Part shown: in pieces, positions 1,826-63,724 of the stretch
Layout of the letters: each line of letters opens with the position of its first letter
How positions within the stretch are numbered: position 1 is the stretch's first letter
DNA from: Oculina patagonica
Taxonomy: Eukaryota
Assembly: GCF_052425735.1 (NCBI RefSeq)
Contig: NC_135769.1
Span: 28,892,001-28,956,000, forward strand
Length of the DNA: 64,000 bases
Direction of reading: 5' to 3'
The notes under the pieces: generated by a model
Told to the model about the DNA's origin: nothing
Seen by the model: the letters and a program-made list of their open reading frames with translations, nothing else
The model's database searches: none
Translations under genes and position numbers: made by a program

Positions 1826-2660
1826 GTATGCATCAGCCGTCAACTGTGATGTCTCCCTTCCTCAGCACTCCAATCCAGTCTGTAAGGCCATCAGGAATGC
1901 TGCTCTTGCTGAAAACAAGAAGACCTACACTTTGATACACGACCCAGCTTTGCATGGCTTTGCTCTGTTGAACATGACCGCGCAGGAGCTGGGAGCGGTT
2001 GCTCTGAAAGACCCGTTCATGAGATATGTTACAACAGCATATGTTGGAATGACACAAGCGAGCAGTAAAGTTTTTGATACGTACATCAACATAACACATG
2101 GACAAGAGTTCACGGAAATCGCAGATTATCTCAAGTTGTCAGCGTTTTTCCAAACATATTTTGAGCCGGTAGTTGGGGTAAATACTACATTTCTTTTTGG
2201 TTTTTTAAATTTTTAATAACATATACTTAAGTGTATTTTAATTTTAGTTCTACGTTTTATACATGAGCCTCTGGCTCGGACATTGAGGGAGACCTCGTCC
2301 CACGTATGAACAATAAAATTGTATTGTATTGTATTGTTATTATCTATAAAGAATACGATACCAGAGTTGAGAAAAGCTATTGGGTCTGGTAACTAAGGTA
2401 AATGGCCAGTCCAAATTGGGTACATTGTTGATATTAAAAAGTACATAAAGACTTGAAATTTATTCAAAGGCCTTGTTTCTTTACGAGTTTGCGATGTCAA
2501 TCCAGCTTTGTCATCATCATCAGCATCATCATTTGATTGGTTAACAGGAAATAGTATATGAGCTCATATACCATTGACCACAAATATGGTAGCCAAAACG
2601 CGTGAACGAAAACAGCTGGGGAGCTCAAATATTGCAATTCTTCGGGCGTTTTTAATAAAA

Positions 2661-2697
<37 letters not shown>

Positions 2698-5097
2698 AGC
2701 GAACTCGGCGCTACGCACCCCGTTGACTATTTACCATCTCATATCCAACGCGCTCTTGTGGAACTGCTGTTACATATAACAGCCTATTGTTCTGGTACTT
2801 AAAAATGAAAACCGAGGATAAAAATCTACTTTACTTAATATATTTTTTCTCTTTTAGGAATACGTGAGGCTACCATCCAAACACGAGGCGTTTATTAACG
2901 ACAAAACTAAATGGATCAGTGATAAGATCTTCACTCAGCAGCGTCTGGCAGGAGTTAATCCCATGTCAATCAAAAGGGTGACAATTCACGGAGAAGGTAG
3001 GACTGTTTCCTGGGTAACCATTAATACATTCCAGTACTTTTTTTCACATCAAATTACGTGATGACAGAAAAACAAACGTGCGATGGACACACGGAAAGGG
3101 GACTGATGAACAATTAAATAATCAGTTAGCCAGAGACCGGAAGAAACCCATCATTCAGAGAAATCCGCCATTCTTGTAAATGTCCAGGCGCAGATCGCCT
3201 GCTTGAATGTCCCTCCGTACATTGGATAATTCAAGTTTTACAATGTTCCTACATCGATTATAGCTGGTCTAACATATAACTTTGGCGATGCTTGGCAATC
3301 TGGCTAATATCATAATTTTTCTACGTAGGTATTATGAATTCGTACTTTAACGTTCCTTCTTGAATGTACTAAAATAGATGTTGCTGCATAAACGAATGTT
3401 TCTTTGTCGGTAATAATGCAAGTTTGATATCGTCTGTGTATAGCTATAATGTTTCTGCCTCCCTGTCATCTTACCTACTTTAACCTCTATTATAAACATG
3501 TCCCTTATGACTGGTATAATGCCACATGCTCTTAAAGTTGCCGTATTAAGACCACTTCTCAAGAAACAAGACGCCGATACTGAGCAACTACAAAACTTTC
3601 GGCCAATCTCAAATCTGAAATTTGTGTCTAAGCTGATAGAGAAAGCTGTTGCTTCGCAATTAAACGATCACATATTGAAGCACCACCTTGGTGAGACATT
3701 TCAATCTGCTTATAAAAGATTTCACAGCACAGAGACAGCCCTTGTAAGAGTTCACAATGATATTCTTACTGCTATCGACAACAATAACTCCGTTATTCTA
3801 CTTTTACTTGATTTATCGGCCGCCTTTGACACTGTAGACCATTTCATCTTATTATCAAGGCTATCTACTCGGTTTGGGATCAAAGGAACAGTACTTTCTT
3901 GGCTAAAATCATATTTAACATCACGTACACAGTTCGTTAAAGTCAATAACAGCAGATCTTCTCGACGTTTCTTGGAACGTGGAGTACCACAAGGATCAGT
4001 CCTTGGTCCTCTCTTATACTTACTGTATACATCACCTCTTGCCGACATTATTAAGCGTCACAACTTAGAGTACCATTTCTATGCTGACGACACACAGCTT
4101 TATGTGGCGTTAAAAACTGACAGTCTTGATAGAATGGCACAGTGTAAAACTTCGATTGAGCAGTGTGTCTGTGATATTGACAACTGGATGGCTGTCAACA
4201 AGCTCAAATTAAATCAAGAAAAGACTGAAGTTTTTCTTATCAGCTCAAGGTATCGCCCTAGGCCTCCTTTAGAGTCTTTTCAAATTGGCAATGTGAACGT
4301 TGTACCCACATCCTCAGCTCGAAATCTGGGCGCTATTTTTGATCAGTGTTTTAACCTTGAGGAACACATCAAATCAATCTGCAAGTCTTCTCATTACCAT
4401 ATAAGGAATCTAGCCAAAATTAGAAAGTACATTGATGAAGAGAGTGCCAAAACTGTTGTTCATGCCTTTATTACTTCGAAGTTGGATAACTGCAACTCAC
4501 TGCTATATGGTCTTCCACAGCATCTACTTTCAAGATTACAATCCGTTCAAAATACGGCAGCTTGAATTATTACACATACTAGGAAATTCGATCATATTAC
4601 CCCTGTGCTTAAGAAGCTACACTGGCTACCTGTCCGCTATCGTATAATTTACAAAATTCTCTTACTAGTCTACAAAGCTCTCCATGGGGCAGCGCCTTGC
4701 TACATGCAAGAGTTACTTTACTGTCACACCTCTCGGAGATTTTTAAGATCATCTACACAGCACCTTCTGGCGACCCCCAAAGCAAAATTAAAAACATATG
4801 GAGAGAGAGCGTTTGCCGTGGCAGCCCCAAGGCTGTGGAACACAATCCCACTTGAACTTAGATAAAGTCCTTCTATTGACATTTTTAAGAGACATTTAAA
4901 AAAGTACCTTTTTAAACAGGCTTTTTAATCATTATAATTTTTTTAGGTACATTTGAACTTATATTTGTAAATATCCGTTTTTAAAATTTTTAGAGCTTTT
5001 AACTTTTTAACATCATTTTATTAATATTTTTTTATTGTAAAGCGCCATGAGCAATTAGTGGATTTTGGCGCTATAAAAATACTTTTTATTATTATTA

Positions 5098-5137
<40 letters not shown>

Positions 5138-8100
5138 TCCTTCTTTTATGCAATGTACGGCGTTATAATGTCCCTATTTTGATAATATTAATATCGCTAA
5201 ATTCGTCATATTCCTTATAGAAAAAAGGAGATGTACAGTAAAGACAGAAGACGGAAGATGGTGTCATTTTCCATTTACCTATCGTGGTAAAGTTTACCAC
5301 AAGTGTACCACTGTTCGCCATCATAAAGCTTGGTGTTCAACTGCAGAAAAATACAGACCGGGCAGATGGGGAGTCTGTGCAGGTAATATAAGAATTCAAT
5401 ATGTAATCGACAGGACTTAAAAATTCCAATGTTCAAATATTTTTTTTTTATCTATTTATTTTAACTATATATTTTTTTGTTTATCTCATTGTTTAGAGGA
5501 AGACAAAAGCCCAGAAGAGGAACGTAAGTCCTACTATTAACTGACTTATATTTAGCAGTAATTAAAAAACAATGAACGATCGAAGCAAGCCATTGCGGAA
5601 GTATGCTTTAAATATAAAAAGGGTAATTGGCTAACTACCTCCTGCCAGTTGGGATTTTTTTATTTTAAACTGAAACTTGTTCTTTGGCAAAAGAAACTGA
5701 AGCACAAGTATATTTGTTATTCCAACAGTATTGTTGAACCGTTTTTTTTACTAACTTATTGTTACCTTTTCAGAAGCTTTGGACTGCACCGTTAAAACAA
5801 CAAAAGGCGAATGGTGCCATTTTCCATTCACCTACAAAGGAGTGAAATATGAAGAATGCACAAGAAAGGACTACTTTGCACCATGGTGTGCTACAAATGA
5901 TAAAAACAGATGGGGTGTCTGCGCAGGTAATAGCTCACATCTTCATAATCTTCATTTGGACGTGTTACGAGTAGCCCGGGAAGTTTTAAGCTTTAGCAAA
6001 CTAGGATGGCTTTTGATGTCGAGGTTCATGTTCTCCTAAAGCGAACGATATCCCATCCTGGGTAGTAAAGCAGGTCAAGTCGCAGGTTTGTCGGTGGCGT
6101 TTAAGAACCAGATTACACAGAGAAAGAGGTTATGTACTGTCTTAGGCTGCAAAGAGATCATGGGAAAAAGCTCCTTCAACGTACAGTATTAGAGCCCAAA
6201 TGTAATCATTTCATTGCTGAAGCATTTTTTTTCTCTTCTAGGAAAAGAACAGGAGAAAGAAGAGCAAGGTAGGTTTTAACAGGTTTAAAAATATAACATT
6301 AATATAGTATCGATTCCACCAAGGTAAATATAGCATGCATCACATGATCAATTTCTCATCCCGTCAAAGGCAGGATACTCAAAAATAATCTCCTAGAATA
6401 TCAGATAAAGGAAATTCGATTTGTACTTCTTCAGAGCCATCTCCCAGTCTTATTCTCTTTATGAATGTAATGCAGTAGCTGATATCCTACTTGTAGTTTA
6501 TGTTACACCAGTAAATGCTTGTTTATATTCACCTCTCCTTTTGACGATCAAATGCCTTGATAAGCAGACTGAAAACTCCACCTTCAAGTAATTGGCTTGG
6601 GTATTCTTCATCTTGCCCATGCAAGTCAGCAGTACTTATAATGCACCCGAACCTTTCAAAGTCCTGCTAGGTTACTTTGCTTGAAAAATAGAAAGAAACA
6701 TTAATTTGTAATGGTGATAATGTGTTTTCTCCTCAGGACCAGTAGGACTGGATTGGAACAAGTTGAAGGAGACGCTGAATCCTGAATTTGACTGGGATGC
6801 CGCTGTGCAAGCGGCTCTGAAGACTGGAGATTCTTTGGAAGATGTATGTCTTTTTTTGTTGTTGTTGTTGTTAATTTGGTAGCTAATAAAGAGAAGCACT
6901 ATACCTTAAACTTGTAGCCGGGTTGGCTGCATTAAAAAGGACTTTGAGTGAAACATATTTATTCCTCCTGATATCATAAGCTTAATAAAAAATACAAATA
7001 GACTGCAGAACATGTTACTTATAATTTTCAGGCAATAAACCAAGATCGTATCTACGCTCTGCGTTACGAGTTGTGTGATGACATGGACAGATCACCAGAC
7101 CTTACCGACAGAGATCCTGGAAGGACCATGTGGAACTTTCTCTCTCCCATTGCGCTCTTTGCATCTACGAAGGTTGGTGAATATAACATACTCGTGCCCG
7201 TCGCCATACAGATGGACTACACGCCAGGTTGGTAAAAACTAATCAATATGTATATATACCGACGTATGTTAATGCCACTGAACATCTTCTTGATATACTC
7301 GTGCCAAGAAAATAAGTTTAATCTCGTCAGGTTTTCAAATATGCAACCGTTTACTCAGACGTACTTGAATCCGCCTTACTGAGGATTGCTTAACTGTACT
7401 GAATTTTTTTCTTTTGGCGGACTTTTCCTAAAAGCAGGGTTTAAATTTAGTTGTGTTCTTCAATGGCTGATGTAGAAGTACTCATAGGCGCGTGGAGGTT
7501 GAGAATGGGTGTGGTGCAAGTGAAAAGAGGGAATGGGGGGGGGGGGGAGGGGGAGAAGCTAAGTGCCGCATTGTTCCAATAAAATCAAAAGCTTTTGGAT
7601 CTCTTGATTTTCTACTTTTCAACAAGTTAAAAAAGAGTGGCCCAGCCCCAGGTCCGCCACAGTTACTGTAATGTGAGCCAGCAGTGCGTTTTTCATTTGA
7701 GAGGATTGCCTCATGTCCATTTTTTCCCGTGGCACTTTGTTGTCTCATTGCTTGTATTATTTTGTATTGATTTTAAACCCGCGCGGTTTTTTATCCTGAC
7801 CGATAACTCTGTTTCACCAGATTCTGTGGTTTACACTCCAAGCGACGGAGACAACTGGTTGATTGCCAAACTCAATGTTCAAATCACGGATTTGGGATAC
7901 TCACAAATTGTTGAGCACCTCGCTAAGGTATGATTTGTTCCTTACACTTATCATGACTGTAAACTATAAGGCAATTGCAAATTTATAGTCATGCATGTAA
8001 TTTTCCCAAGTGACCACGGCTGCTTTAGCCGTTGCAGTGGCGTTCAGCTGCTTTGTGAATCTGTTTTCATCTTTTCAGGTCCATTATTTCATCGAGCCAT

Positions 8101-9155
8101 TCTGTGTCTCCTTAAAACGGACCTTGCCTCCTGTACATCCGCTGAATCAAATACTGAAGTATCACTGCCGAGAGGTGATTGTCCCTAACAAATTTGGAAC
8201 TCCTGCTTTAGTGAATGAAGCGCGGTTCATGGACCTTCTTTTTGCATATGGAAACGACGGTGCAATAAGACTCCTTCAAGATGCACATCCATTATCAACA
8301 TGGGAAGTGACAGATTTCAGGCGCAACATCAAGGTACCGCTTGCCTCACAATATATAGCGAGCTATTAAATTTGGTAACTAGCAACCACCATAGAATGAA
8401 ACTGCAGAAGAAATATAGTACCATTTTCATCAGGAATACTGCGTGGCTGACCTTGTTAAAGGGTTCATTGAGATCCAATTTTAACCTGAAGTTAATTGTG
8501 AAAACGTGAAAAATGAACGACAAAATTGTTATTATTTAAGTATTTAAGTCGACAATACGCAACTTAGACCTTCCAACTTAGATTCACTAACTATGCCTAT
8601 ACTACAAACAAACTGCATGGAATAAAACAATATATACAAAAATGTGTCCACGGTGCTTGACTACAAAAAACTGAGACAATTTTTTATATAGAACATGCAA
8701 ATTTGTATTAAAACAAAGCGTTTTCTCTTGCAAACAGGACTCGCATTGACGTTGGCCTGCTTGTTTGTTTTCTATCTTCCTTAAAAGGCCTAGGGAACGC
8801 ATATACTTTATTTTCATCCACAAGTCCAAGATAAAGTGTACAACTCAAATGCAATCGTAGCGCATTACCTCGATCCTAAGAAACGATAACGTAAACTAAA
8901 TGATGACAGGTAAAAAATGCCTATTCTAAATGACACTATCTATCTGTCTGTTTCCTTTTTTTTAATAACATGTCAAACTTTTCTTTTTCTTTGACTTTGC
9001 AAGAAACGCGGACTGGATGACAAAAAACTCCTGCCATACTTCCCTTACCGAGATGATGGTATAAAGATATTGGAAGTTATTGAACACATGGTGAAGAACT
9101 ATGTGAACTTGTAAGTGAAATAATAAAAAAACAACCTGTTTGCCTACCAAGTTCA

Positions 9156-9217
<62 letters not shown>

Positions 9218-11227
9218 CCGTTTTCAAAAACGTTTTCTTCAGAGAGATATATAGATAGATAGATACCTTTTGTTTAGAGTCGGTGAACCATGTTATTTTT
9301 GCATGAACCGCACGCTTGTTAACACCAGACTGTTAACAAAAACACACCCACGTGAGAAAACAAACTGAATATTCGAGTGTCTCAATTCCCTTAGATGGTT
9401 GACGGTTAAAAATAAGCCGTTTTCGCGGTTGATGGCGGCAAGGCCAAATGACGGATGACGGTTAATTTTATGGAATGACGGTTATAACAAGAAATTAAAT
9501 CAGCAAATTTGGCTGCAATTTTTCATAAAAGAGTACAATTTCGCCCACATTTTGACTTGCTCACCATCAGAGATCAAATTTGACTAATGCTTCTATTTGT
9601 CTTCCCGATGTTGTTATGGCATTTCTGTGTTCAAAAAGCTCCTCTGATTCAGTATCGCCGTAGGCACTGTCCACGGGTCACTTTCAATTTCTTGCCTGTA
9701 GCCAGACGAAAATACTACAAAGACAATAACAGAAAAAAGGCCCACTTCCTTCATATTTATATTTTTAATTCATAGCCTCTTACAGCATACTGAAACAAAT
9801 GAATAAATTCAGAATTTTTACTGAGGCACCGTGCCTCGGTTCGCCAGTTACTAACTACAGCCCTGAAATTCATTTACTTCAAAAGGTTCGCGCCCATTGA
9901 TTGTCCGGCGATTCCTTGTTTGCTATTCTTTTCTGAGGCCCCGTCCACACTGACCCGGGTAAATTTGAAAACGCATCTTTTTTTCTCCGGTTAGGCCAAC
10001 CGTCCACACTGAAACAGCGTTTTCGGTCACCGAAAACGGAGCTTTTCAAAAACGCTCACCAATGAGCGTTTGGACTTGGAGCGTGAAATAGTGTATTTTT
10101 ATATTTTATTGTAAATAATTTTAGAGGGCCACTGGTTTGTTAGTATTTTTTATGTTATTTTAGTGCTACCCTCGTTAAATAAAGACTTTACTTTTACTTT
10201 TACTTACTAATGAAGCGTATCGTTTTCAAATTTACCCGAGTTAATGTGGACGGAAAACATTTTACGCGGCGTTTTCAAATTTCTCCGTTTTCAAATTTAC
10301 CCGGGTCAGTGTGTACGGGGCCTGAGACTGAAGTATGTGCTTGATATCGTTTAATCAGTTTTTCCTTCTTACTTCGATGAGTGCTTACTTCCGCCTGAAC
10401 AGTCCCCCTCAAAAGACGCTTGACATCGTGCTTGGTAGAAGAGAAAGAGCCGCAAAAGCGAGATCATGCTTAGTAATTCTCAGTGACTCGTTTATGATCT
10501 GTAATTATAACACCAGTTATAAATTGAAAAGGCCGACGTTCTTCGACACCGGAAATGTTTCCAGACGGAAGTCGGTTTTGAATATTTAAACGAACATTTA
10601 TAAACAGCTTTACTTGACTTCATTTTAGTCACTCGTTGATATCCGAGACAGTCGACGGCTAATATTTTGCTGGCTTTATTGACGGTAAAAAATATTGCAT
10701 TTTTACTGTTGAAGGTTAATTTTTTGACCATTTGACAGTTGACGGTAAACCGCATTGCGATCCTCATATTGTTTTATCAAAATAAAAGGGTATTGATTGT
10801 GAAGAAATGAAGCTTTTCAGAATATCGTATCTCTTAGCTTTGGCGATCAAACATGCCAATTCGCGAGGAACGGACGTTCGCAGATCGTTCGCGAAAGCGT
10901 TGCAAAATGTTTGTTCGTTACGCCTAGTAACTTCGGTTTTGTGAGCGCTCTTCCGAGCTCCTAGAACAAGTCAAATAATTCGCCAACGCAAATCTTTACT
11001 AACAGGAGCGGGCATTTTCTGTCGCCTTTCTGTCCACGATCAATTCATTTTTATTTTGAAACAATTAATATGAGATTCATTTTGTTTTCTCATGTGGGTG
11101 TGTTTTTGTTAACAGTCTGGTGTTAACAAGCGTGCGGTTCATGCAAAAATAACATGGTTCACCGACTCTAAACAAAAGGTATCTATCTATCTATATATCT
11201 CTCTGAAGAAAACGTTTTTGAAAACGG

Positions 11228-11285
<58 letters not shown>

Positions 11286-11356
11286 CCGTTTTCAAAAACG
11301 TTTTCTTCAGAGAGATATATATATCTCTCTGAAGAAAACGTTTTTGAAAACGGGTG

Positions 11357-11428
<72 letters not shown>

Positions 11429-13438
11429 CCGTTTTCAAAAACGTTTTCTTCAGAGAGATATATAGATAGATAGATACCTTTTGTTTAGAGTCGGTGAACC
11501 ATGTTATTTTTGCATGAACCGCACGCTTGTTAACACCAGACTGTTAACAAAAACACACCCACATGAGAAAACAAAATGAATCTCATATTAATTGTTTCAA
11601 AATAAAAATGAATTGATCGTGGACAGAAAGGCGACAGAAAATGCCCGCTCCTGTTAGTAAAGATTTGCGTTGGCGAATTATTTGACTTGTTCTAGGAGCT
11701 CGGAAGAGCGCTCACAAAACCGAAGTTACTAGGCGTAACGAACAAACATTTTGCAACGCTTTCGCGAACGATCTGCGAACGTCCGTTCCTCGCGAATTGG
11801 CATGTTTGATCGCCAAAGCTAAGAGATACGATATTCTGAAAAGCTTCATTTCTTCACAATCAATACCCTTTTATTTTGATAAAACAATATGAGGATCGCA
11901 ATGCGGTTTACCGTCAACTGTCAAATGGTCAAAAAATTAACCTTCAACAGTAAAAATGCAATATTTTTTACCGTCAATAAAGCCAGCAAAATATTAGCCG
12001 TCGACTGTCTCGGATATCAACGAGTGACTAAAATGAAGTCAAGTAAAGCTGTTTATAAATGTTCGTTTAAATATTCAAAACCGACTTCCGTCTGGAAACA
12101 TTTCCGGTGTCGAAGAACGTCGGCCTTTTCAATTTATAACTGGTGTTATAATTACAGATCATAAACGAGTCACTGAGAATTACTAAGCATGATCTCGCTT
12201 TTGCGGCTCTTTCTCTTCTACCAAGCACGATGTCAAGCGTCTTTTGAGGGGGACTGTTCAGGCGGAAGTAAGCACTCATCGAAGTAAGAAGGAAAAACTG
12301 ATTAAACGATATCAAGCACATACTTCAGTCTCAGGCCCCGTACACACTGACCCGGGTAAATTTGAAAACGGAGAAATTTGAAAACGCCGCGTAAAATGTT
12401 TTCCGTCCACATTAACTCGGGTAAATTTGAAAACGATACGCTTCATTAGTAAGTAAAAGTAAAAGTAAAGTCTTTATTTAACGAGGGTAGCACTAAAATA
12501 ACATAAAAAATACTAACAAACCAGTGGCCCTCTAAAATTATTTACAATAAAATATAAAAATACACTATTTCACGCTCCAAGTCCAAACGCTCATTGGTGA
12601 GCGTTTTTGAAAAGCTCCGTTTTCGGTGACCGAAAACGCTGTTTCAGTGTGGACGGTTGGCCTAACCGGAGAAAAAAAGATGCGTTTTCAAATTTACCCG
12701 GGTCAGTGTGGACGGGGCCTCAGAAAAGAATAGCAAACAAGGAATCGCCGGACAATCAATGGGCGCGAACCTTTTGAAGTAAATGAATTTCAGGGCTGTA
12801 GTTAGTAACTGGCGAACCGAGGCACGGTGCCTCAGTAAAAATTCTGAATTTATTCATTTGTTTCAGTATGCTGTAAGAGGCTATGAATTAAAAATATAAA
12901 TATGAAGGAAGTGGGCCTTTTTTCTGTTATTGTCTTTGTAGTATTTTCGTCTGGCTACAGGCAAGAAATTGAAAGTGACCCGTGGACAGTGCCTACGGCG
13001 ATACTGAATCAGAGGAGCTTTTTGAACACAGAAATGCCATAACAACATCGGGAAGACAAATAGAAGCATTAGTCAAATTTGATCTCTGATGGTGAGCAAG
13101 TCAAAATGTGGGCGAAATTGTACTCTTTTATGAAAAATTGCAGCCAAATTTGCTGATTTAATTTCTTGTTATAACCGTCATTCCATAAAATTAACCGTCA
13201 TCCGTCATTTGGCCTTGCCGCCATCAACCGCGAAAACGGCTTATTTTTAACCGTCAACCATCTAAGGGAATTGAGACACTCGAATATTCAGTTTGTTTTC
13301 TCACGTGGGTGTGTTTTTGTTAACAGTCTGGTGTTAACAAGCGTGCGGTTCATGCAAAAATAACATGGTTCACCGACTCTAAACAAAAGGTATCTATCTA
13401 TCTATATATCTCTCTGAAGAAAACGTTTTTGAAAACGG

Positions 13439-13513
<75 letters not shown>

Positions 13514-16500
13514 GAATAATATGGATTTACCAAACGATGACTTCCAGTAGAAGGATCTAAAGAGATACGGTGCTTCAATGTAATTTTAGTTCAGTGTGTA
13601 ATAAGGCGTCATTGAGGCAAACTTCTAACTGTTCCAGCTTTAATTGACACGACGTTTCGGCCTTCGGCCTTCTTCAGATGCGGAACTTAGTATTTACAAG
13701 ATTAAAAAATAAAATGTTAAAAATTTTTAACATTTTATTTTTTAATCTTGTAAATACTAAGTTCCGCATCTGAAGAAGGCCGAAGGCCGAAACGTCGTGT
13801 CAATTAAAGCTGGAACAGTTAGAAGTTTGCCTCAATGACGNNNNNNNNNNNNNNNNNNNNNNNNNNNNNNNNNNNNNNNNNNNNNNNNNNNNNNNNNNNN
13901 NNNNNNNNNNNNNNNNNNNNNNNNNNNNNNNNNNNNNNNNNNNNNNNNNNNNNNNNNNNNNNNNNNNNNNNNTTTTATTTTCAATTTTTTATGGGTAGCA
14001 TACGTAACATAAGTAAATTAAATTTTACCTTAACGCGTTTATAATATTTCTTGACCGTGAAATAAATGTCAGTTAGAACCCACCTCACGGACTTAAATCC
14101 AGTTACTAAACGACTATGACAAACGCTGGCGGTAGAAAACACAAGAGAAGTGGAATAACTCTAAATATTTTTGTTAAGCGCAAGAGATTATTAAGTTACT
14201 GCCGAGTTCTTTAAGCGTGCTTGTGTAATTTGTTTTATAAATATAAGGCAATAATTGTACCGTATTGTTATAGCTTCGTGTGGCACAGTCTTACTAAAAC
14301 CAACCGACAAATCTCTGTCCATAATGTTCGCTTGATAAAATATATACTATTTACAAGGCTAAAAAAATTAAAAATTTTAAAAATTAAAATGTTAAAACCA
14401 AACGTTTTCGGCTAATTTTTACATTTTTTACCTTTTTTAGCCTTGTAAATAGTTTATAGTTTTTGCTATTGTCATAGTTTCTTTTTACAAGGCGATGAAA
14501 TATTGCTTTTGTTTAGGTACTATAAAGAGGATAAAGACGTGAAAGAAGACGTGGAACTTCAGGCGTACCTCAACGAAGTGTCACTTAATGGAACAGGACC
14601 GAACGGAGGCATTGGAAGGGTAAATATGAAGAAGAAAATAACGTACACTTATCCTCAAACTAAGACGTTGATTCATAAATAACAGAATCTCTTTTACTAA
14701 TAAGTTAATTAGGGTAAGGTAAATATGAAGACCGACGATAGAACATACTAAGTGGCCTGTTGGTTAATACCATCGTTATCAAAAGACAGGATTTTTTAGT
14801 TTTTGTGTTGGCTTTGTTTGGTAACAGTTTTAATTTGAGAGACGATCCAAAAATTTCTGCCTGTCGCCTAACCCAATTAAGTTGGGGGTTTAGCCATGAT
14901 ATACACAAATGTCTCGAAAGAAAAATGCCCTGTGGATTGACCGTGTTCGATCCAATACACACCTATAAGTTGCCACGTATCCAGCGTGGTGACCCGATGG
15001 TGTAGTGGATATCACGCCTGACTAGTAACAGGGAGACGCGGGCGAACTGCGGGGATGTATTTTTCTTTCATTTCAGAGACGTGTGTCGAAAGCCTTCTGT
15101 AATTTATTTACATCTTTCTTTCTGTTTCTAAGGCTTCATAAAAAAATTATGTCTGAGTTTTAATTTGGGTAAAACAGGTTACAATACGGATTACAGTTAG
15201 CATTCTAATTTACAATGTTTCCTGTTCTTGATTACATTTGGCATGACAACACGCTGGTTTATCAATTAACACACCCGAATTCCACTCTTTTTACGATGTA
15301 AAGTGACTAACTCACATGAATAATACATAAAAAAAATCGTCAAAATTACAAAAGCTTAACAACAACAACAACAACAACAGTGATGCATTGCATGTAAAAG
15401 GCCTCGAAGAAGTAGAGTTCTTCCTATCTCCAAGCATAGTAGATGTTATACTTCGCAATTATTAAACAGACCAGAAGTTAAAAACAGAAGTTTAAACAGT
15501 AATTTAAACCAAACTGCTGTCTTAAATTTGCTCTCAAGCGTTGTACAAACTATATCAGAAAATGTTCCACTTTTGAAACCATAGTTTCGGCATTGTTTAT
15601 GATTCTGGGAAGCCTGTTGAACACGTTTCTTTCATTTGTCTTTTGAACAGATTCAAGGCTTGCCTGCGAGTATTGATTCCAAAGAAGAGCTCTGTGACAT
15701 TGTAAGCCGCATCATCTCTCACGTGACGATCCAGCACGCCGCGGTTAACTACGAGCTGTCAGATTATGCTGAGTACATTCCCAACCTTCCGACTAAACTG
15801 TACAATGACACCAGAGTGAAAGAAGGGGAATTCTCTGTGTTCCGTCTGCCAAACAGACTGACTTCAGCTGTAAGTTCACGTGCAGTACTAATTTGATACT
15901 TTTAGGGGAGAGGTAATTGGAAAGTGTTTCAGAGAAATTAAAAACCTGAAACAGTTCGAAACAGCTGGTCAAAAAGAGCGACAATTAATTGTTGAATATT
16001 TACTTGATTTACGAAATTCCCACAGCAGACATGGTAGCATTTTAGTATTTGTATTTCCCTTACGAATTAAGTATTGAGTGTCTTAAAAAGTAACAATGCG
16101 ACCTTTGAGAAGTATAACGAAAGTATTATTATTGGTCTTGTTATAAAATAAAACACAATTCTTGGGAAACATCAACTTTTTTCAGTTTGGAGAATTAACT
16201 TGAACCTCATTGGATTTTTACTTTCTGTGGCAAGACGCACTTTTAGAGAGGTCAAACGGCTTTATTCTGTTTTTAATTTTCAGATCGAGGCTAGCTTCAG
16301 CAACTCCTTGGCAACTTTCCGTTTCGATTCCTTGTTTGACTATGGTAACGAGCTTGAGGACAGCAAGGCTGTAAACCTCGTCAATGGTTTCTATAGTTAC
16401 CTAATGCACGTTGTCCAGCCTCGCATGCAAGAAGAAAACCGGAAACGGAAGGAAAATGATGACCTGACCTATCCATACCTTATTCCAAGATGGCTGCCAA

Positions 16501-16517
16501 ATGGCATTCATACCTAG
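1826..16517 (+). CDS. LOX-A: secreted-type lipoxygenase with two FN2 modules inserted in the catalytic domain (5' signal-peptide exon not found in the window)
   Basis: 14 exons, all AG/GT flanked and frame-consistent: 1826-2177, 2858-2996, 5221-5382 (FN2), 5497-5523, 5774-5926 (FN2), 6242-6268, 6737-6843, 7032-7227, 7821-7927, 8079-8333, 9004-9110, 14517-14619, 15651-15869, 16284-16517 (TAG). Total 2188 nt, about 728 aa. LOX motifs: [29 protein letters not shown]-x17-H-x8-H, FPYRDDG, DVELQAY, QHAAVN, C-terminus WLPNGIHT. Confidence 0.93.
3455..5133 (+). mobile_element. 5'-truncated L2/CR1-group LINE (RT domain, C-terminus, 3' UTR, (TTA)n tail) in a LOX-A intron
   Basis: ORF 3498-4565 has [33 protein letters not shown] and YADDTQLY. 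The same frame continues past stops at 4565 and 4865 ([25 protein letters not shown]). 3' end tgtaaagcgcc...ggcgctataaa followed by (TTA)n. Confidence 0.92.
5221..5382 (+). CDS. LOX-A FN2 module 1 exon (phase 1-1, 162 nt)
   Basis: [54 protein letters not shown] matches the FN2 pattern C-x-FPF-x-Y-x-G-xx-Y-xx-C...WC-x-T...WG-x-C. Flanked by ttatag and gtaata. Confidence 0.92.
5774..5926 (+). CDS. LOX-A FN2 module 2 exon (phase 1-1, 153 nt)
   Basis: [50 protein letters not shown]. Flanked by ttcag and gtaata. Confidence 0.92.
9215..11230. mobile_element. 2016 bp non-autonomous DNA transposon with about 150 bp TIRs (CACCC...GGGTG) in a (TA)n microsatellite, copy 1
   Basis: TIR CACCCGTTTTCAAAAACGTTTTCTTCAGAGAG... 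at 9215-9364 vs 11081-11230, one mismatch seen. (TA)n on both sides. No transposase ORF. CAC ends suggest CACTA/EnSpm but the superfamily is not proven. Confidence 0.75.
9937..10322. mobile_element. Nested PIF/Harbinger-like MITE (mirror copy at 12334-12719)
   Basis: tga|GGCCCCGTCCACACTGACCCGGGTAAATTTGAAAACG ... CGTTTTCAAATTTACCCGGGTCAGTGTGTACGGGGCC|tga; 3 bp TGA target-site duplication. Confidence 0.8.
11231..11425. repeat. (TA)n microsatellites flanking a 74 bp perfect hairpin of two fused TIR tips (11283-11356)
   Basis: (TA)n - CACCCG...AGAGATATATATATCTCT...CGGGTG - (TA)n. Further (TA)n runs at 9159-9214 and 13442-13510. Confidence 0.9.
11426..13441. mobile_element. Inverted, apparently identical second copy of the 2016 bp TIR element
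   Basis: Reverse complement of 9215-11230 (position maps to 22656 minus position). The ORF track shows mirrored ORFs 9587+/12881-, 10335+/12067-, 10492-/11889+. Confidence 0.75.
13607..13840. mobile_element. 234 bp perfect palindrome, Penelope-like inverted terminal repeat with a minimal hammerhead core on each strand
   Basis: Centre at 13723/13724. CTGAAGA-A-GGCC-GAA-GGCC-GAAACGTC at 13770-13796. Abuts the N gap at 13841. Confidence 0.6.
13841..13972. other. Assembly gap (further gaps at 18020-18176, 28727-28863, 60074-60332)
   Basis: Runs of N. Confidence 0.99.
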
Positions 16518-16685: not shown

Positions 16686-18264
16686 ATCATTTGTTATGAT
16701 TTTTATTGTGTGCAAGTATTTTGTTCATTTGATCTCGCAGATGTATAACGATGTGAATCTGATCATCGCGAAAAGTAACGTCAGGTTTTCAAGCCATACT
16801 TTGTCAAGTTTATTGATTTTTTTGGAAATGATCACAGGACAGGCTCTAGGTTGCAAAGATGAATGCGCATGAAACTGTTAAAACAAATGGGATGTGCCAG
16901 GCTAAAAGCAACTTCATACCCAAGATTTTCGTTCCCCTTGACCAAAGGTCGGGAAACGAGCGACCCTGGAAAGTTTTGATTGGAAGTCCGAAAATATCGG
17001 ACTGAATTGCGCTTGCCTAGCTTTCAAAGGAATGACTCAACGAACTTCTTGGGGTTTTACTTCCGGCCATTTTTATTGTTTTCAAAGCCGGCCAATCAGA
17101 ATCGATCCTGCAACTGAACTTTCGAGAGTCGCTGGTTTCGTCAAGCAAGTTTGAGCATTTAAAGAAAATTTATGTTAAATGAAGAAATAGTGAAAAAAAG
17201 CGGTGACGTTATATTTGATAGCGAATGACGTTTAAATGTATTTTAAAGAGAATATGGACAAGCGACTTAATATCATATCAGCATAATTTATTTTGTTTTT
17301 TTTTTCGTTTTCTTCTTGTTTGAAACTTTAATTCTAAAATATAAGAAACCATATATAATTTATATCCGTCACTTATTTGGGGAAAGTTATGTGTTATTGC
17401 TTCAAGTATGTATAAATAAATTTGTATGCTTACAAATTTACAATATTATTAACGGATGGACCATTATTTTCTTGGAGAGTGGGGGGGGGGGGGGTATGAA
17501 AAATTTTCATCTTGTACTTTTTTGCACCTCTGCAAACATTTTTCCGAAATGCAAACTATTTTTTAATACTTATCGTGTCTGCCATCAATTAGGCTCTACA
17601 AACAATGTTTTTCATTTTTTTATACTCTCTCCCCCAGCTTCCAGCATTCACCGATAAAGTATTCGATGAGATATTCAGCTTGTACATGATAACATGCAGT
17701 GCCTTTGCATCTCATCCGGGTAGGTTGTCCAGGCTAGTCCGATATATTCCGGGTGATAAGATGCACTTGGAAACTTGCGTTTACGTTCTTTGTTTTGCAT
17801 AAATTTACTACAAACCCAGTATAAAACGATTCAAAGTTAAAAGAAAGTTTATCAGCGGAGGGACTTTTACACCCACACAGTGAGGAAGGCGGGAATTCTT
17901 TTAAATGGCTCTTCTTCATAACTAGATCCAGGGGTATTACCGTGTAAAAAGGGCAAGGATGACTCGTGCTTTTACAAAACGAAACACAGAGAAGGTTCTG
18001 TGTCTTAAAAGCTGCCGACNNNNNNNNNNNNNNNNNNNNNNNNNNNNNNNNNNNNNNNNNNNNNNNNNNNNNNNNNNNNNNNNNNNNNNNNNNNNNNNNN
18101 NNNNNNNNNNNNNNNNNNNNNNNNNNNNNNNNNNNNNNNNNNNNNNNNNNNNNNNNNNNNNNNNNNNNNNNNNNNNTACACTTAGCTATGGTTTCGATGC
18201 GTCCCGCAGATATGGTTAGCAAAATCTGCGGGAACGCACCAGCTAGTTTACAGGTAAGCCACAA

Positions 18265-38194: not shown

Positions 38195-38250
38195 CTTGAA
38201 GCTGTTATTAAGCCTCCAATTAAGGAAACCAGAACAACCAGAACTTTCAT
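38195..38250 (-). CDS. Second signal-peptide exon copy upstream of LOX-B (alternative first exon or orphan)
   Basis: MKVLVVLVSLIGGLITASR/gtatag, 56 nt, phase 2. No LOX exon 2 lies between it and 34408. Downstream intron sequence (aaattagatcacctttgctga...ctctaaaaatgatct) is also shared with the 34353 copy. Confidence 0.7.
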
Positions 38251-46700: not shown

Positions 46701-47539
46701 TCGAACTAAGAGAAAAAATGATAGGTCACCGAACTCGTTTACTTTGAGAAAACGATGATTTCTTCTCACGCGAGCCAAGCCGCATCGAAAAAAGCCGCCA
46801 TTTTGTTTATGTGCGCGCGCTAATTACGGGTAACAATTCTGCGCAGTAAGGATGCGCAATGCAATACTAGGGAATCACCTTAATCAAGGCGCGTTTTTGC
46901 CATAAAGGCCACGTATGAATCGACTCAGATCTTAGTTACCCACCTTTAATTTCTTCTTCTCCTGAAAGACAAAAGAAATTAAATCGATTATGCATTTGAA
47001 TATAGTATTACTCCCGGTCCTGAGGAGATAAGACGTGAACATCGTCATTAAATAACCTCAACTTTCCTTCTCGAAAAAAAAAAAAACTACAAGGGCTCTA
47101 AGAGAGTTATTTGACTGTATTTCATTATGTACAGCTTAGGAGTATAAGTGGAAATGGTTAACTATATCTAATATATATAGTAAATGGTTTGAACCCAGGA
47201 GTATCAGTAGGTCGTATAGTACAGTTATAGTGTGATCGTCTGTGTGATAGTAGTTCTGAGAAGAACTGTTGTTGGTGACGGACGTTTAATTTCGACAACC
47301 TAAGTTTACGTAAAGTTTACGTAAACCTGAATTTACCTGCTATACAAATAAACAAGATAATCATACATTTTGTCTCACTGAGAAAGTCATCGTCTGATGT
47401 TGTCTAACTTGGTGCACGGTTGTATTTAATACTTTCGTATTTTGTTTTTACGGATAGGCCACTGACATAACCTAATTTTTTTTTCTTTAATCTAATATAT
47501 CAAAAACGAGAAAGTATCCTGGAGGCCCCGTCTCCTGCT

Positions 47540-58078: not shown

Positions 58079-61000
58079 TTAAGTCTGGATTCCATTCGGC
58101 AGCCATCTTGGAATAAAATATGGATAGGTCAGCTGACCTCTCGCCTTCCGTTTCCGGTTCTCCTCTTGCATGCGAGGCTGAACAACATGCATTAGGTAAC
58201 TATAGTAACCATTGACGAGGTTCACAGCATTGATGTCTTGAAGTTCGTTTCCGTAATCAAACAAAGTATCGAAGCGGAAACTGCCAAGGGAATTGAAGCC
58301 AGAAGACTGAATCTGCAGGAAAAAATAAGATTGGTTATGTTTTTATTTTTCTCATTTTTCCATTAAAAAAATATTCTTCATTTTAAGACAAGAGTAAGAA
58401 AACTGGCTCTTTAAAAGTAGTGGGTCGAATGACAGCATTGCCGGGCAAACTAAAACTTGGTTAAATGAGTGCTAAAGGCAAACTCGTGGCGACTGTCGAA
58501 TTTACGCCAAATATAAAAATTACGAATGTTCAATGGCTCGAAAAATTATAGGGGCACAAAAAGTAGGTATTGTTAAAGCTTGGTTTAAGGGGAAATTTTT
58601 TAGCAGCACAGTTAACAATGTACCATGGCAGGTATAACGACCTGTAAAATTGCTATATTTATATACAGAGGAAGCCACATCAGTTCTTGCTGGCTTTCAT
58701 ACGGGTCCCCTATCCAGGTCGAATTCGATTTTGGAAATTGTTGGTTTTTCAGGAGGGAAAAAAACCGGAGAACCCGGAGAAAAACCCTCAGAGCAAAGCG
58801 AGAACCAACAACAAACGCAACCCACACATGGCACCGGGCCGGAATTGAACCCGGGCCACATATGTGGGAGGCGAGCGCTCTCACCACTGGGTCATCCCTG
58901 CTCCCCTGTCTTGCTTTACAGTCGAAGACCCCCCCCCCCCCCTACCACTCCCCCCGCCACAAATCTCCAGCTTCTCTTCTAATCCAAAAAATAATTAAGT
59001 TTAACTTACCGCAGTTGTCAGCCTGTTAGGAAGACGGAAAACAGAGAACTCTCCATCTTCCACTCGGGTGTCATTGTACAGCTTAGTTGGTTGGTTTGAA
59101 ATGTATTCGGGGTAGTCTGTCACCAAATAGTTAACAGAGGCGTGATAGATTGTCACGTGGGAAATGATGCGACACAAAATCTCACAGAGCTCTTCCTTTG
59201 AATCAATAGCAGCAGGCAAACCTTGAATCTATGAAAGAGAAAAAGAATTAAATTAAAGCCATTAAGGAATATTCTGATCCAAAAAGAATAGAAAGGCCTA
59301 AATTTTAACCCTTTTCTCACAGGCAAATTTTTAATTTGTCAGAGGTGGCACGTTATTGACTCAAGAATCACACAAACTAAACATGCCTTACAATCGTATG
59401 CAACCAACATATCGCATCAGCGATATAAGATAATTTTTTTAATTGCTTTAAATGAATTTTATGCTGTTAAGAAGTCAAAAGAATAATATCAGTTTAGGGC
59501 TAAGAAAACGTGCAGGTTGTTAGTTAGCTTAAGGAACTTCTTCTTTGGTGATTGATCGACAACTTGGCGGCGAATGACCAAGTCAGGCCCCTAAAACAGG
59601 CTCACTAGAATTAAGTCATTGTAAAAGAGAGAAATTTTATGTAAATTACGCATCACTGTTGTGTATTGGGGATAAGTTTGTCTATCTTCATTCTTCACAC
59701 TTACCATTCCAATGCCTCCGTTTGGTCCAGTTCCATCTAATGAAACTTCATTGAGATAAGCCTGAAGCTCCACATCTTCTTTCACGTCTTGATCCTCTTT
59801 ATAATATCTAAAAAATATCATACCTCTTGGTCTTGAAAACTGAATTCAAAGTTGCAGTTCAAATTTGTTTTGGTTTGAACGTTTTCAAAAAAGTTTGAGA
59901 GTTTCCTTGTTTTGGCGACGATCTTTTTCGATTTAACCTGGCGTGGCAACAAAATGGAATCTGTTGAAATATCGGATGAATTTCTGTAATAAACAGTAAC
60001 GTCATCAACGATCTGCCCATACGTACTGAACAGAAGACGCGTTCACACACTAAACTCTGTTGCCACGTAACTCNNNNNNNNNNNNNNNNNNNNNNNNNNN
60101 NNNNNNNNNNNNNNNNNNNNNNNNNNNNNNNNNNNNNNNNNNNNNNNNNNNNNNNNNNNNNNNNNNNNNNNNNNNNNNNNNNNNNNNNNNNNNNNNNNNN
60201 NNNNNNNNNNNNNNNNNNNNNNNNNNNNNNNNNNNNNNNNNNNNNNNNNNNNNNNNNNNNNNNNNNNNNNNNNNNNNNNNNNNNNNNNNNNNNNNNNNNN
60301 NNNNNNNNNNNNNNNNNNNNNNNNNNNNNNNNACGGGAACATAACAAAAAAGGGTTAAAATAAAAGAAAATACTAAAAAACTATGGCTATTTATTCCACT
60401 CTAAGCATTTATATATTTGAAACATGGGCCTTAGCTTTGCCGTGAAGTTCGAAGACGCGGCTTCTGAATCACTTTGGAAAGAAAAGTGTGTTACACTTAC
60501 AGGTTAACGTAATCTTTCACCATGTGTTCGATAACTTCCAAGATTTTTAAACCATCATCTCGGAAAGGGAAGTAGGGCAGCAGCTTCCTGTCATCTAGTC
60601 CGCGGTCCTGGTGAAATAAAATCGACATAAAGTTCTATACACAGTAGCATTAAAAAAAATGTAAACTAAAAAGTCAAAAAATATTCCAGGTATATGCGTT
60701 ATCTGGAATTTGGGTTACAGTGGAACCCCGATATAACGATCCTCGATATAACGATATTCCCGATATAACGATGAATATTCTATGTCCCAGCAAAAGTTAC
60801 AGTAAAATGTATGGGACAGAACCCCGATATAACGATCTTCGATATAACGATATTCCCGATACAAGGATGAAAATTTAGCGAACCGAACGTAAAATCTTCC
60901 CCGATATAACGATATTCTCAGTTCACAGTCACAATTAAAGCAAAATATTGAATTTAATTCAATAACAGAACACCAAAAAGGTTATCTTTAACGTTTCTGA

Positions 61001-63724
61001 CAACAGCTTTGTAAGTCTTTTGAACGAATTGATATACGACAATGACACTGTATTCTAAGCCTCTTCATCCAGTAAAAAAGTATATGTTTGGTTTACCCCG
61101 ATATAACGATATTTTCGGTCATTTTACGGCCATATCGTTATATCAGGAACTTCGATATAACGATTCCTCGATATAACGATATAAATTTACTGCTCCCTTG
61201 GCATATCGTTATATCGGGGTTCCACTGTATTAAATTGCTTCTCACATCGTAAACGTTAGGCGTTGGAACGTTTTTTTTATTAGCAATGCAATGTGTACTT
61301 GAAACTACTCACTCAAGACACCGCTACAACTCACTTTGATGTTCTTTCTATAATCTGTCACTTCCCATGTTGTAAGTGGATGGATATCTTGCAGAAGTCT
61401 CTGCGATCCCTGGCTTCCATATGCGAACAACAAAGTAGCAAGCCCTGTGTCTCCAAGTAGGACAGGACTTCCAAACGTGTTGGGGACAATCACCTCTCGG
61501 CAGTGATACTTGAGCATTTGGTTGAGTGGATGTACGGGAGGCAAGGTCCGTTTTAAGGAGACACAGAATGGCTCGATGAAATAATGGACCTGGAACGAGT
61601 TGTCAAGATAAAAAAATAATTCAAAGTTTACCTGACATGCAACGGTCATAAGAACAGCGGCTTGGTAAGTTTAGCTTTCGAACTATGGACTAGGCCTGTC
61701 CCGATTGTGCACGGCAGCTTTTGAGCAAAGTTTTCCGTTTGGAGGACGTTTGAAGCAACTTTTTGCGGTTCTAGCAACCTCGAGCAAGTTTTGCCTTTCT
61801 GAGTACCTTTTGAGCGAAATATAGGGTTTAAAGCACATTTCAAGCACGAAAACGTCAACGATTACATAGAAAACTTCAATTTATGCGAATTTGTCGAATG
61901 TTTATCAACCTTTTGAACACATAAACTGTCAATTGACAAAGTTTTTTCAGTCAGTTAGACTTCAGAGTATTCTTAAATATTTTTGTGCAACTGTTTAAAG
62001 CTAAGTTTCACGCTTTTTTTCTTGACCGATGTTAGCAATTATTGAGAAGAACGAAAAATAAAGCTTTTTAATAACGTTAATTTAAAAATATCAAGAAATT
62101 TAGAAATCAACTTTTTTGTATTTCTGGCAATTGTTTCTTTAGCAACTTTTTGGCATTCCAGTGAGCAACTTTCCAGCATTTTGCGAACACAATCGGGACA
62201 GGCATAGACCACGTCAATAAGTCACATAAAGGGGTTTAAATATCGCATTTGTAAGTGCAGAATCAGGTTTAAGAATAGTATTTTATAAAATATATAATAA
62301 CTAATTTTGACGCAAAGCCAAGCAATGGCAAAACATCAAGATTTTGTTGCTGTGGGGTATTGATGATGATAGATGTCAGTAAAACAAAATTACAGTAAAA
62401 TTTTTTTGCCAACCTGTTTTGCCGGGAAAATAATTATGAATGAAATGCACCTATGTTTAACTAAAAACCGACGAACACCTGCATGCATTTTCTCGACAAT
62501 AATTTGCCTTGTACTTCAGTTAACAGTTTTTTTTTTCAGTTACCCTAGCGAGGTGCTCCGCAATTTGAGAATATCCTAAGTCCGTGATTTGAACATTGAG
62601 TTTGGCAAGCATCCAGTTGTCTCCATCATTGGGGGTGTAAACGGCTGAATCTGGCAAAAACACAATTAATTTCAGGTAAGGAACACACAAAAAAGTAATG
62701 AGAAAACATACATACTTCACGTGAAACAACGTAAGGTATGTTAAAGCCTTTATGTTATTTAAAGATATTAGTATAATTTTGTATAGCATCAAATGGTTAG
62801 GAGAATTTTTATTTCCCCTGGAAGGGATTCTAGTTTATTGCATGTTTTTTTTTTCAAAAATTCAGCGGTTCCCATTTATCGCACTCCTGTATGGATGAAA
62901 AGAAGCCCTGAGCGAGATGGTGAAAGTATTTAAAATGTCACCGATCGAAAGTCTGTCTTGTTTGGTTTTACGAAATCCAGAGTTGAAACACCACCTCTGT
63001 AAAAGAACTGATGATGATAAGCGGTTCGATTAAAACATTGACAGGCCGGACAAAAATCTACGGGGTGCTCTGTGCCCCGGTAAATAGACGTTTTATGGGT
63101 ACGAAAATAATTTAACGCAAACGATACATCTCGCCAGGACGTTAAAGAAACTGACTATATCTAGGATTTTTTCAACTACCAGGCCTAGAACCGATATGGC
63201 CGTGTCATATGGATTATATGAATTTGATGCAATGATAAACATTTCCGTCTCATATACACTAAACAGATAAGTTGCAACAGTGGTATGAATATATTTTGGA
63301 TATTTACCTGGTCTGAAGTCCATTTGTATGGCAACGGGCACAAGTTCATTGAAACGACCAACTTTCGCAGATGCAAACAAAGCAATGGGAGAGAGAAAGT
63401 TCCACATGGTCCTTTTAGGATCTCTATCTGTAAGGTCCGGTGATCTGTCCATGTCGTCGCACAACTCGTAACGGAGAGCATAGATGCGACCCTGTCTTAT
63501 GGCCTAAAAAGGTAATTGAATTAACAACTTAGAAGCGTGTTGCTTATATCTTTCCTTATAAGTCAGAAGGTCAGTCAGTCAGTCAGTCAGTCAGTCAGTC
63601 ATAAATCAATAACATACATCTTCCAAGGAATCATCAGTCTTAAGAGCCGCTTGCACGGCAGCTTCCCAGTCAAATTCAGGATTCAGTGTTTCCTTCAACT
63701 TGTTCCAATCAAGTCCTACTGGTC
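58079..63724 (-). CDS. LOX-D: lipoxygenase paralog closest to LOX-B, 3' portion (5' exons beyond window end)
   Basis: Eight intact exons with canonical splice sites and the same lengths as LOX-A: 63724-63618, 63503-63308, 62650-62544, 61589-61335, 60607-60501, 59807-59705, 59228-59010, 58312-58079 (WLPNGIQT, TAA). Motifs EHLARVH and YHASVN. Confidence 0.92.
58645..58906 (-). mobile_element. tRNA-derived SINE in the last intron of LOX-D
   Basis: Minus strand GGGGAGCAGGGA-TGACCCAGTGG (A box) ... GGTTCAATTCC (B box) ... gggtttttctccgggttctccggttt core. Confidence 0.8.
60718..61227. mobile_element. pogo/Tc1-mariner-type MITE
   Basis: ta|CAGTGGAACCCCGATATAACGAT ... ATCGTTATATCGGGGTTCCACTG|ta; many internal CGATATAACGAT repeats; absent from the homologous LOX-B intron. 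Confidence 0.88.
61691..62206. mobile_element. Non-autonomous TIR element with TA-starting termini and 3 bp TSD (Academ-like)
   Basis: gac|TAGGCCTGTCCCGATTGTG ... CACAATCGGGACAGGCATA|gac. The empty site gaactatggaccacgtcaa is present in the paralogous LOX-B intron at about 24790-24809. Confidence 0.75.

Follow-up and report, generated by a model that had tools for sequence, protein, structure and literature searches.

A lipoxygenase gene cluster of the stony coral Oculina patagonica encodes predicted secreted enzymes with FN2 modules inserted in the catalytic domain

The stretch of DNA analyzed here, referred to as the window, comprises 64 kb (64,000 nucleotides; NCBI RefSeq assembly GCF_052425735.1, contig NC_135769.1, positions 28,892,001 to 28,956,000 of the forward strand) of the stony coral Oculina patagonica. 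It is rich in introns, with a G+C content of ~37%, and contains four tandem lipoxygenase (LOX) paralogs, LOX-A to LOX-D, which were located by tblastn using the exon peptides of LOX-A as queries. LOX-A is the sole paralog demonstrably intact within the window. Its messages join the exons of a predicted iron lipoxygenase, which has no PLAT domain, to a cassette of two fibronectin type II (FN2) modules and two acidic linkers that interrupts the lipoxygenase domain. The preferred reading, which we regard as having about an even chance of being correct, is that the product is a secreted iron dioxygenase which its gelatinase-like FN2 pair tethers to collagenous matrix.

The open-frame splice model of LOX-A consists of 14 exons (E2-E15) within the window and matches the RefSeq protein XP_078349100.1 (P0066; 747 amino acids), an Oculina patagonica entry named 'polyunsaturated fatty acid 5-lipoxygenase-like isoform X3', at 726 of the 728 aligned positions. 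The sole difference between the two is found in the last exon, where an alternative acceptor is located 6 nt upstream. Exon 2 (352 nt) is identical to P0066 residues 19-136, and exons 8-15 encode the WLIAK motif, H439/H444, H626/N630, and the C-terminal ..PNGIHT. The signal-peptide exon lies outside the window and is known from the RefSeq model only; the three RefSeq isoforms of LOX-A exhibit differences confined to the signal peptide. On the window itself, Pfam fn2 matches were found at positions 5169-5417 (E 2.7e-15) and 5755-6036 (E 6.7e-9), flanked by exons matching Lipoxygenase.

Logan contigs from X1 and X3, two RNA runs that belong to different studies, were aligned to positions 2800-8700. 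All five junctions that an earlier note on this DNA had proposed for LOX-A (2996>5221, 5382>5497, 5523>5774, 5926>6242, and 6268>6737) were recovered in the contigs of these runs, each with GT..AG boundaries after the stated shift, and the E9>E10 and E10>E11 joints were found in X1 contigs. One X1 contig runs from FN2b through linker 2 and exon 8 to exons 9 and 10; another contains 490 nt of upstream message followed by exon 3 and the start of FN2a, and a loose end among the RNA contigs at 2857 reads into the end of exon 2. The contigs carry LOX exons joined to either end of the FN2 exons, which rules out a separate nested FN2 gene, and their FN2 joints rule out a cassette that is always skipped; the fusion was thus upheld against the two objections that the earlier note had raised to its own proposal. 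A third objection was that a PLAT-coding exon might be found upstream. Since exon 2 accounts for 352 of the 490 nt in the X1 contig, the message ahead of it measures just 138 nt, enough for a 56-nt signal exon and untranslated region but with no room for PLAT. Two further runs, X10 and X14, cover some introns (that between FN2b and exon 8, and the repeat in intron 3) with zero spliced joints and thus behave as DNA.

Analysis of the protein gave a consistent picture of a lipoxygenase split by fn2 in the absence of PLAT, as had been proposed, with the Pfam scan and the predicted fold in agreement. Pfam recognized Lipoxygenase (PF00305, E 1.9e-42) and two fn2 modules (PF00040, E 1.2e-21) in P0066 and gave no PLAT (PF01477) match at E<=0.01. 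An AlphaFold model built with a 78-sequence alignment (mean pLDDT 90, pTM 0.82; a single-sequence model with pLDDT 35 was discarded) likewise contains no PLAT, and its N-terminal 170 residues are mainly helical. The FN2 modules are modeled with pLDDT 70-85 and the linkers are disordered. The predicted signal peptide leads straight into the SLPQ catalytic start, with few residues between. In sequence searches, the catalytic core gave its top matches to 5-LOX and 8R-LOX, with E about 1e-48 (phmmer E 1.4e-48 for human 5-LOX). Foldseek retrieved LOX structures at E 4e-30; CspLOX2, a Cyanothece mini-LOX without PLAT, ranked first, with a TM of 0.81 on the target, ahead of coral 8R-LOX and human 5-LOX. 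LOX-A retains H439, H444, H626, and N630 as iron ligands, and these are nearly invariant in 78 relatives, 65 of which have Thr as the C-terminal residue, the family end being ..PNGIQT or ..PNGIHT (16509-16517 in LOX-A). By sequence and predicted fold, the products would be iron lipoxygenases, and dioxygenase activity is predicted. In addition, every anthozoan member compared has two Cys pairs, C26/C38 (64/64) and C451/C472 (69/69); in nine aligned bacterial homologs, the C26/C38 pair is absent and C451/C472 nearly so (1/9, 0/9).

The organization of the insert suggests how the FN2 modules were acquired. As had been claimed from the letters, the insert in LOX-A is frame-neutral with canonical splice sites: its exons add up to 162+27+153+27 = 369 nt, and each is bounded by AG..GT and is of phase 1-1. 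Exon 3 of LOX-A ends in ..CAC GGA GAA G/gt (the slash marks the splice site). In the FN2-less gene P0072 of Pocillopora damicornis, exon 3 ends in ..CAC GGT GAA G/gt and is followed by an empty phase-1 intron of ~340 nt at the cassette codon and then by an exon starting ..AVGLDW. At the P0099 locus of Desmophyllum pertusum, exon 3 is followed by FN2a of 159 nt, an acidic mini-exon of 24 nt, FN2b of 153 nt, and exon 8 onward, with the same splice phases as in LOX-A. The phase 1-1 exons, together with the empty phase-1 intron at the same codon in Pocillopora, bear the standard signature of exon shuffling, in which symmetrical phase-1 modules would have entered a pre-existing phase-1 intron. The cassette site follows ..RVTIHGE and, in alignment with human 5-LOX, falls between residues about 269 and 280, so that the FN2 modules sit in a surface loop after ..RVTIHGE. 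Two RefSeq isoforms of Montipora foliosa, P0052 (744 amino acids) and P0060 (631 amino acids), differ in the presence and absence of the cassette, respectively, and outside it share identical residues 1-182 and 448 of 450 matching positions downstream. Thus, the cassette is treated as optional in annotation.

Comparison of the FN2 exons of LOX-A and LOX-C gave a dN/dS of ~0.17, with values of 0.05-0.28 for the core exons, and the cassette is under purifying selection. Among LOX-A, LOX-B, and LOX-C, the dS of FN2a was unusually low at 0.10-0.16, on a small sample (52 codons; exons 5221-5382, 28099-27941, and 49801-49643), compared to about 1.0 for FN2b and 0.23-0.58 for the core exons; the low value relative to FN2b and the core hints at gene conversion confined to the FN2a exon.

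These observations bear on the possibility that the cassette has no targeting role and is either a tolerated product of exon shuffling or a means of oligomerization or partner binding through an extra Cys. Each FN2 module does contain a fifth Cys (C-T-V-K-T..; residues 187 and 250 of P0066, encoded at about 5232 and 5785), which precedes the first canonical Cys by 10 residues (12 in FN2b), and both the annotated cassette-less isoforms and the presence of Pocillopora genes and some Oculina paralogs without the cassette are in keeping with a dispensable insert. However, a cassette with the same exon plan has been kept in both major scleractinian lineages, and the purifying selection and the conservation of the pocket aromatics likewise count against this possibility. 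A cassette without a targeting role is therefore regarded as quite improbable.

The history of the family separates the absence of PLAT from the gain of FN2. With P0011 from Montipora as the query, 124 relatives were retrieved; a search with exon 2, which returned mostly single-exon fragments and the spurious repeat proteins P0030, P0045, P0047, and P0050, was set aside. Among NCBI proteins, Pfam Lipoxygenase and fn2 occur together in Montipora capricornis, M. foliosa, Porites lutea, Oculina patagonica, and Desmophyllum pertusum, and P. harrisoni has an FN2-LOX by motif and alignment, its precomputed Pfam record showing Lipoxygenase only. The FN2-bearing Desmophyllum locus is GenBank OS493_019509. 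FN2-less relatives with a like predicted signal peptide and SLPQ start were found in Pocillopora, Acropora, Stylophora, Nematostella, and Actinia, and bacterial PLAT-less LOXs have about 30% identity to the coral family and the SLPQ start in common with it. In a quick maximum-likelihood tree, a single clade made up of scleractinians only (support 100) has four subclades, three of which contain FN2 genes; these span complex and robust corals, while one of the four branches in this unresolved clade is FN2-less. Furthermore, the cassette-bearing robust-coral subclade includes Pocillopora P0072 and Oculina P0080/P0082, which are without FN2. Because LOXs with a predicted signal peptide but neither FN2 nor PLAT are found across sea anemones and many corals, whereas FN2-bearing members fall within one scleractinian clade, the absence of PLAT predates the gain of FN2, which is a later, optional add-on in that clade. 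It follows that FN2 did not replace PLAT, and on this point the earlier note, which had viewed FN2 as the replacement for PLAT, is contradicted. Some single-FN2 relatives carry, in place of the fifth Cys, a CC doublet at the position of the first canonical Cys.

A site of action outside the cell is suggested by the N-terminus of these proteins. LOX-A, LOX-B, LOX-C, and the family at large begin with basic residues, continue with a hydrophobic stretch of ~12 residues, and have A-S-A ahead of the predicted cut, and an A-x-A cleavage motif with a hydrophobic N-terminus is found throughout the family. We infer that the LOX proteins enter the secretory pathway and act extracellularly. The proteome of the skeletal organic matrix in Desmophyllum pertusum is reported to include eight lipoxygenases and nine collagens (bioRxiv 10.64898/2026.03.24.713908, 2026 preprint), and the LOXs in this proteome, like the conserved Cys pairs, provide indirect support for secretion. 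A secreted LOX might nevertheless be cargo that acts in mucus, gland-cell, or cnidocyte secretions, in defence or wound response, and not in the skeletal or mesogleal matrix. Predicted signal peptides occur family-wide, including in non-calcifying sea anemones, and in the anemone member P0144 a propeptide-like stretch ending in KR comes after the signal peptide, as would suit such cargo. However, no supporting proteomic or expression data were found in the literature, and LOXs were detected in a coral skeleton proteome; we give this possibility a low probability.

The choice of ligand for the FN2 modules determines where a secreted enzyme would be held. Compared with solved structures, the FN2 pair matched the MMP-2/MMP-9 repeats best (E about 5e-19), and PDC-109 matched at E 4e-10. 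In the alignment to MMP-2/MMP-9, C, FPF, Y, WC, and WG.C are retained and the aromatic pocket positions are conserved. Collagen tethering is proposed because the FN2 pair is closest to the gelatinase collagen-binding domain and retains the aromatic pocket residues. Under this proposal, the FN2 pair would hold the enzyme on collagenous matrix, which could be mesoglea or the organic matrix of the skeleton; the tethered enzyme would oxygenate polyunsaturated lipids from vesicles or cell debris; and inclusion or skipping of the cassette would yield a matrix-bound or a free form, respectively. The aromatic pocket of FN2 modules serves both collagen and choline phospholipid as ligands. The modules could thus also bind choline phospholipids, as in PDC-109, a seminal BSP protein, and dock the secreted enzyme on membranes, vesicles, or lipoproteins as a stand-in for PLAT. 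PDC-109 is a significant match in its own right, a single FN2 pocket accommodates both types of ligands, the substrates of the enzyme are lipids, and lipids derived from vesicles are believed to reach the skeletal matrix. However, the gelatinase repeats match far better (E 5e-19 vs 4e-10), and the FN2-less members of the family evidently function without such a module, so that phospholipid docking is considered unlikely.

Several points weigh against a collagen-tethered secreted dioxygenase. First, binding of collagen and binding of phosphorylcholine by FN2 cannot be separated from sequence alone. Second, secretion was read by eye, from sequence only. Third, the skeletal proteome preprint does not name which LOXs were detected, and the FN2-bearing ones may be missing from its eight. 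Fourth, no cassette-skipping joint 2996>6737 was found in the X1 and X3 RNA contigs, which drop rare forms. In addition, the fifth Cys of each FN2 module is unexplained, and the C-terminal residue is Thr instead of the usual Ile. Lipoxygenases usually end in an iron-ligating Ile or Val, and the ligand is the main-chain carboxylate.

The collagen-tethering proposal can be carried one step further, to an alternatively spliced FN2 cassette that switches a secreted LOX between a collagen-anchored form, in the calcifying or skeletal organic matrix, and a free form. This extension is tentative, and we hold it to be rather doubtful. If true, lipid oxygenation would take place outside the cell, bound to matrix, as a step in building the coral skeleton or in wound repair, and the genes would represent the first animal lipoxygenase system to be extracellular and targeted to matrix. 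Animal lipoxygenases are regarded as enzymes of the cytosol, with PLAT as the domain that docks them on membranes. A secreted, PLAT-less anthozoan LOX family would bring the extracellular space into oxylipin biology, and the FN2-LOXs offer a lead on the LOXs found alongside collagens in the coral skeletal matrix. The genes also represent a well-documented natural insertion of domains into an enzyme core, with the empty ancestral intron persisting in a relative.

The coral FN2-LOXs were compared to known systems. First, MMP-2 and MMP-9 also have tandem FN2 modules inserted in a loop of the catalytic domain, and in the gelatinase genes each FN2 repeat is a separate symmetrical exon. The host in the coral genes is a lipid-acting iron dioxygenase and not a zinc protease, the number of modules is one or two compared to three in gelatinases, and the coral modules have a fifth Cys and are separated by independently encoded acidic mini-exons. 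Second, the bacterial mini-LOXs, CspLOX2 of Cyanothece (PDB 5MED) and LoxA of Pseudomonas (4G32), resemble the coral enzymes in lacking PLAT and in having a helical N-terminal extension, but the coral family differs from them in its introns, predicted eukaryotic signal peptide, two family-specific Cys pairs, C-terminal Thr, and FN2 cassette. Third, human 5-LOX and the coral 8R-LOX/AOS-LOX share the iron ligands and the WLxAK motif with the family, which, unlike them, has a predicted signal peptide and is without PLAT, an AOS (allene oxide synthase) domain, or cytosolic Ca2+-dependent docking. The coral FN2-LOX genes are not 5-LOX orthologs. Fourth, the FN2-less anthozoan LOXs of Nematostella, Actinia, Acropora, and Pocillopora are members of the same family, which share the predicted signal peptide, the Cys pairs, and the ..PNGIQT end and have a phase-1 intron at the cassette site but no cassette.

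No paper describing a LOX-FN2 fusion was found in the literature, which agrees with the earlier note as far as publications are concerned; the architecture is nevertheless already present in public automatic annotation (Pfam PF00305+PF00040), under the misleading names '5-lipoxygenase-like' and 'allene oxide synthase-lipoxygenase-like'. Literature searches for a secreted coral LOX, a nematocyst LOX, and a calicoblast LOX found nothing specific. According to a 2018 review (PMC5793058), no stony-coral LOX had been characterized, and signal peptides and PLAT are unmentioned there.

Table 1. Coordinates of the LOX genes, their exons, and the assembly gaps in the window (E, exon).
Feature	Position	Strand	Evidence or remark
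LOX-A	1826-16517	+	tblastn, splice model
LOX-A exon 2	1826-2177	+	signal-peptide end (..RYASA/V), conserved Cys pair, SLPQ catalytic start; AG/GT bounds
LOX-A exon 3	2858-2996	+	W.SD..F.QQRLAG.NP...RVTIHGE; ends phase 1; Pfam Lipoxygenase match
LOX-A FN2a exon	5221-5382	+	162 nt, phase 1-1; Pfam fn2, RNA junctions both sides
LOX-A acidic linker mini-exon 1 (EDKSPEEE)	5497-5523	+	27 nt, phase 1-1; RNA junctions
LOX-A FN2b exon	5774-5926	+	153 nt, phase 1-1; Pfam fn2, RNA junctions
LOX-A acidic linker mini-exon 2 (KEQEKEEQ)	6242-6268	+	27 nt, phase 1-1; RNA junctions
LOX-A exons 8-11	6737-6843, 7032-7227, 7821-7927, 8079-8333	+	splice model
LOX-A exons 12-15	9004-9110, 14517-14619, 15651-15869, 16290 (or 16284)-16517	+	splice model
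LOX-B	34408-20969	-	tblastn; GenBank/RefSeq models P0077, P0175
LOX-B E1	34408-34353	-	signal exon, MKVLVVLVLLIGGLITAS
LOX-B E2, E3	31833-31488, 29026-28888	-	tblastn
LOX-B single FN2 exon (FN2a-like)	about 28099-27941	-	tblastn
A-poor tract in place of LOX-B exon 8	26500-27330	-	27 A in 831 nt
LOX-B E9-E15	26489 down to 20969	-	tblastn
Orphan signal-peptide exon copy	38195-38250	-	MKVLVVLVSLIGGLITAS; between LOX-C 3' end and LOX-B E1
LOX-C	54703-40134	-	tblastn; GenBank model P0074
LOX-C E1, E2	54703-54648, 50657-50306	-	tblastn
LOX-C FN2a, FN2b	49801-49643, 48279-about 48127	-	tblastn, RNA contig
LOX-C acidic mini-exons	49126-49106, 48960-48937	-	RNA contig
LOX-C E8, E9, E10	45660-45554, 45294-45099, 44657-44550	-	tblastn; E10 alignment
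LOX-C E11-E15	down to 40134	-	tblastn
LOX-D	beyond 63724 down to 58079	-	tblastn, open-frame model
LOX-D exons 8-11	63724-63618, 63503-63308, 62650-62544, 61589-61335	-	open-frame model
LOX-D exons 12-15	60607-60501, 59807-59705, 59228-59010, 58312-58079	-	open-frame model
N gap	13841-13972		LOX-A intron E12/E13 (E12 ends 9110, E13 starts 14517)
N gap	18020-18176		intergenic, between convergent 3' ends of LOX-A and LOX-B
N gap	28727-28863		LOX-B intron, just after E3, before FN2 exon
N gap	60074-60332		LOX-D intron E12/E13

The other paralogs follow the plan of LOX-A in part (Table 1). The earlier note had described four paralogs with a common exon plan, each with a signal peptide and all iron ligands. 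Four LOX genes are indeed present, but LOX-B has one FN2 module only and is without exon 8, LOX-C is without exon 3 and has no assembly gap at its place, and only exons 8-15 of LOX-D, all intact, are visible, its upstream exons lying past the window end. A signal-peptide exon was found in LOX-B and LOX-C, while the 5' parts of LOX-A and LOX-D lie beyond the window. The iron ligands are retained in LOX-A, LOX-B, and LOX-D, but in the assembly a 1-nt insertion near 44586, in exon 10 of LOX-C, breaks the frame of this paralog directly ahead of the first iron-ligand His. Likewise, the insert exons of LOX-A, which had been placed in both LOX-B and LOX-C, are represented by a single FN2a-like exon in LOX-B and by both FN2 exons in LOX-C.

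In LOX-B, the place of exon 8 is taken by the A-poor tract, which has a G+C content of about 65% and includes a (TTGG)n run, and both database models of the gene bridge this region awkwardly. The words of the tract are almost absent from all public runs, and the tract may therefore be an assembly artefact; comparison with a paralogous intron plus exon 8, as the source of an A-to-G converted copy, was negative. The N gap just after exon 3 could hide an exon. The orphan signal-peptide exon, which lies 3.8 kb upstream of LOX-B E1 and is 92% identical to the LOX-B E1 region, is probably an alternative first exon, since the RefSeq isoforms of LOX-A vary only in the signal peptide. Duplicated alternative first exons thus appear to be a trait of the LOX locus.

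LOX-C is transcribed: a C-specific RNA contig joins FN2a to FN2b through two acidic mini-exons of 21 and 24 nt, and a second contig joins E9 to E10. A candidate exon 3 for LOX-C, taken from a loose end in X3, was an exact match to LOX-A exon 3 and represents cross-mapping. An X1 contig omitting 1 nt at 44586 was rejected as a LOX-A transcript placed on LOX-C, the depth (21.6) and mismatches being equal. In the LOX-C intron between FN2b and exon 8, positions 46470-47450 are a very high-copy repeat with a word depth of ~100,000 in X10. The exon sizes of LOX-D are those of LOX-A except for the alternative acceptor of the last exon (234 vs 228/234 nt). P0067 was considered as paralog D and rejected.

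Each of the four N gaps lies in an intron or between genes. Across the gap at 13841-13972, the reading of LOX-A is the same as that of the RefSeq protein and has no residue missing compared to the family consensus. A 282-amino acid open frame at 18417-19262 (-), between the 3' ends of LOX-A and LOX-B and adjoining an N gap, is probably repeat-derived. Intron 3 of LOX-A contains, at 3450-4862 (+), a long open frame with reverse-transcriptase-like motifs, presumed to be a fragment of a non-LTR (long terminal repeat) retrotransposon; its depth of thousands in the DNA-like runs marks it as a high-copy repeat. In intron 12 of LOX-A, a short element built around a (TA)n core and reading YIYIYI.. in translation occurs at least three times (9127-9255, 11113-11466, and 13324-13557).

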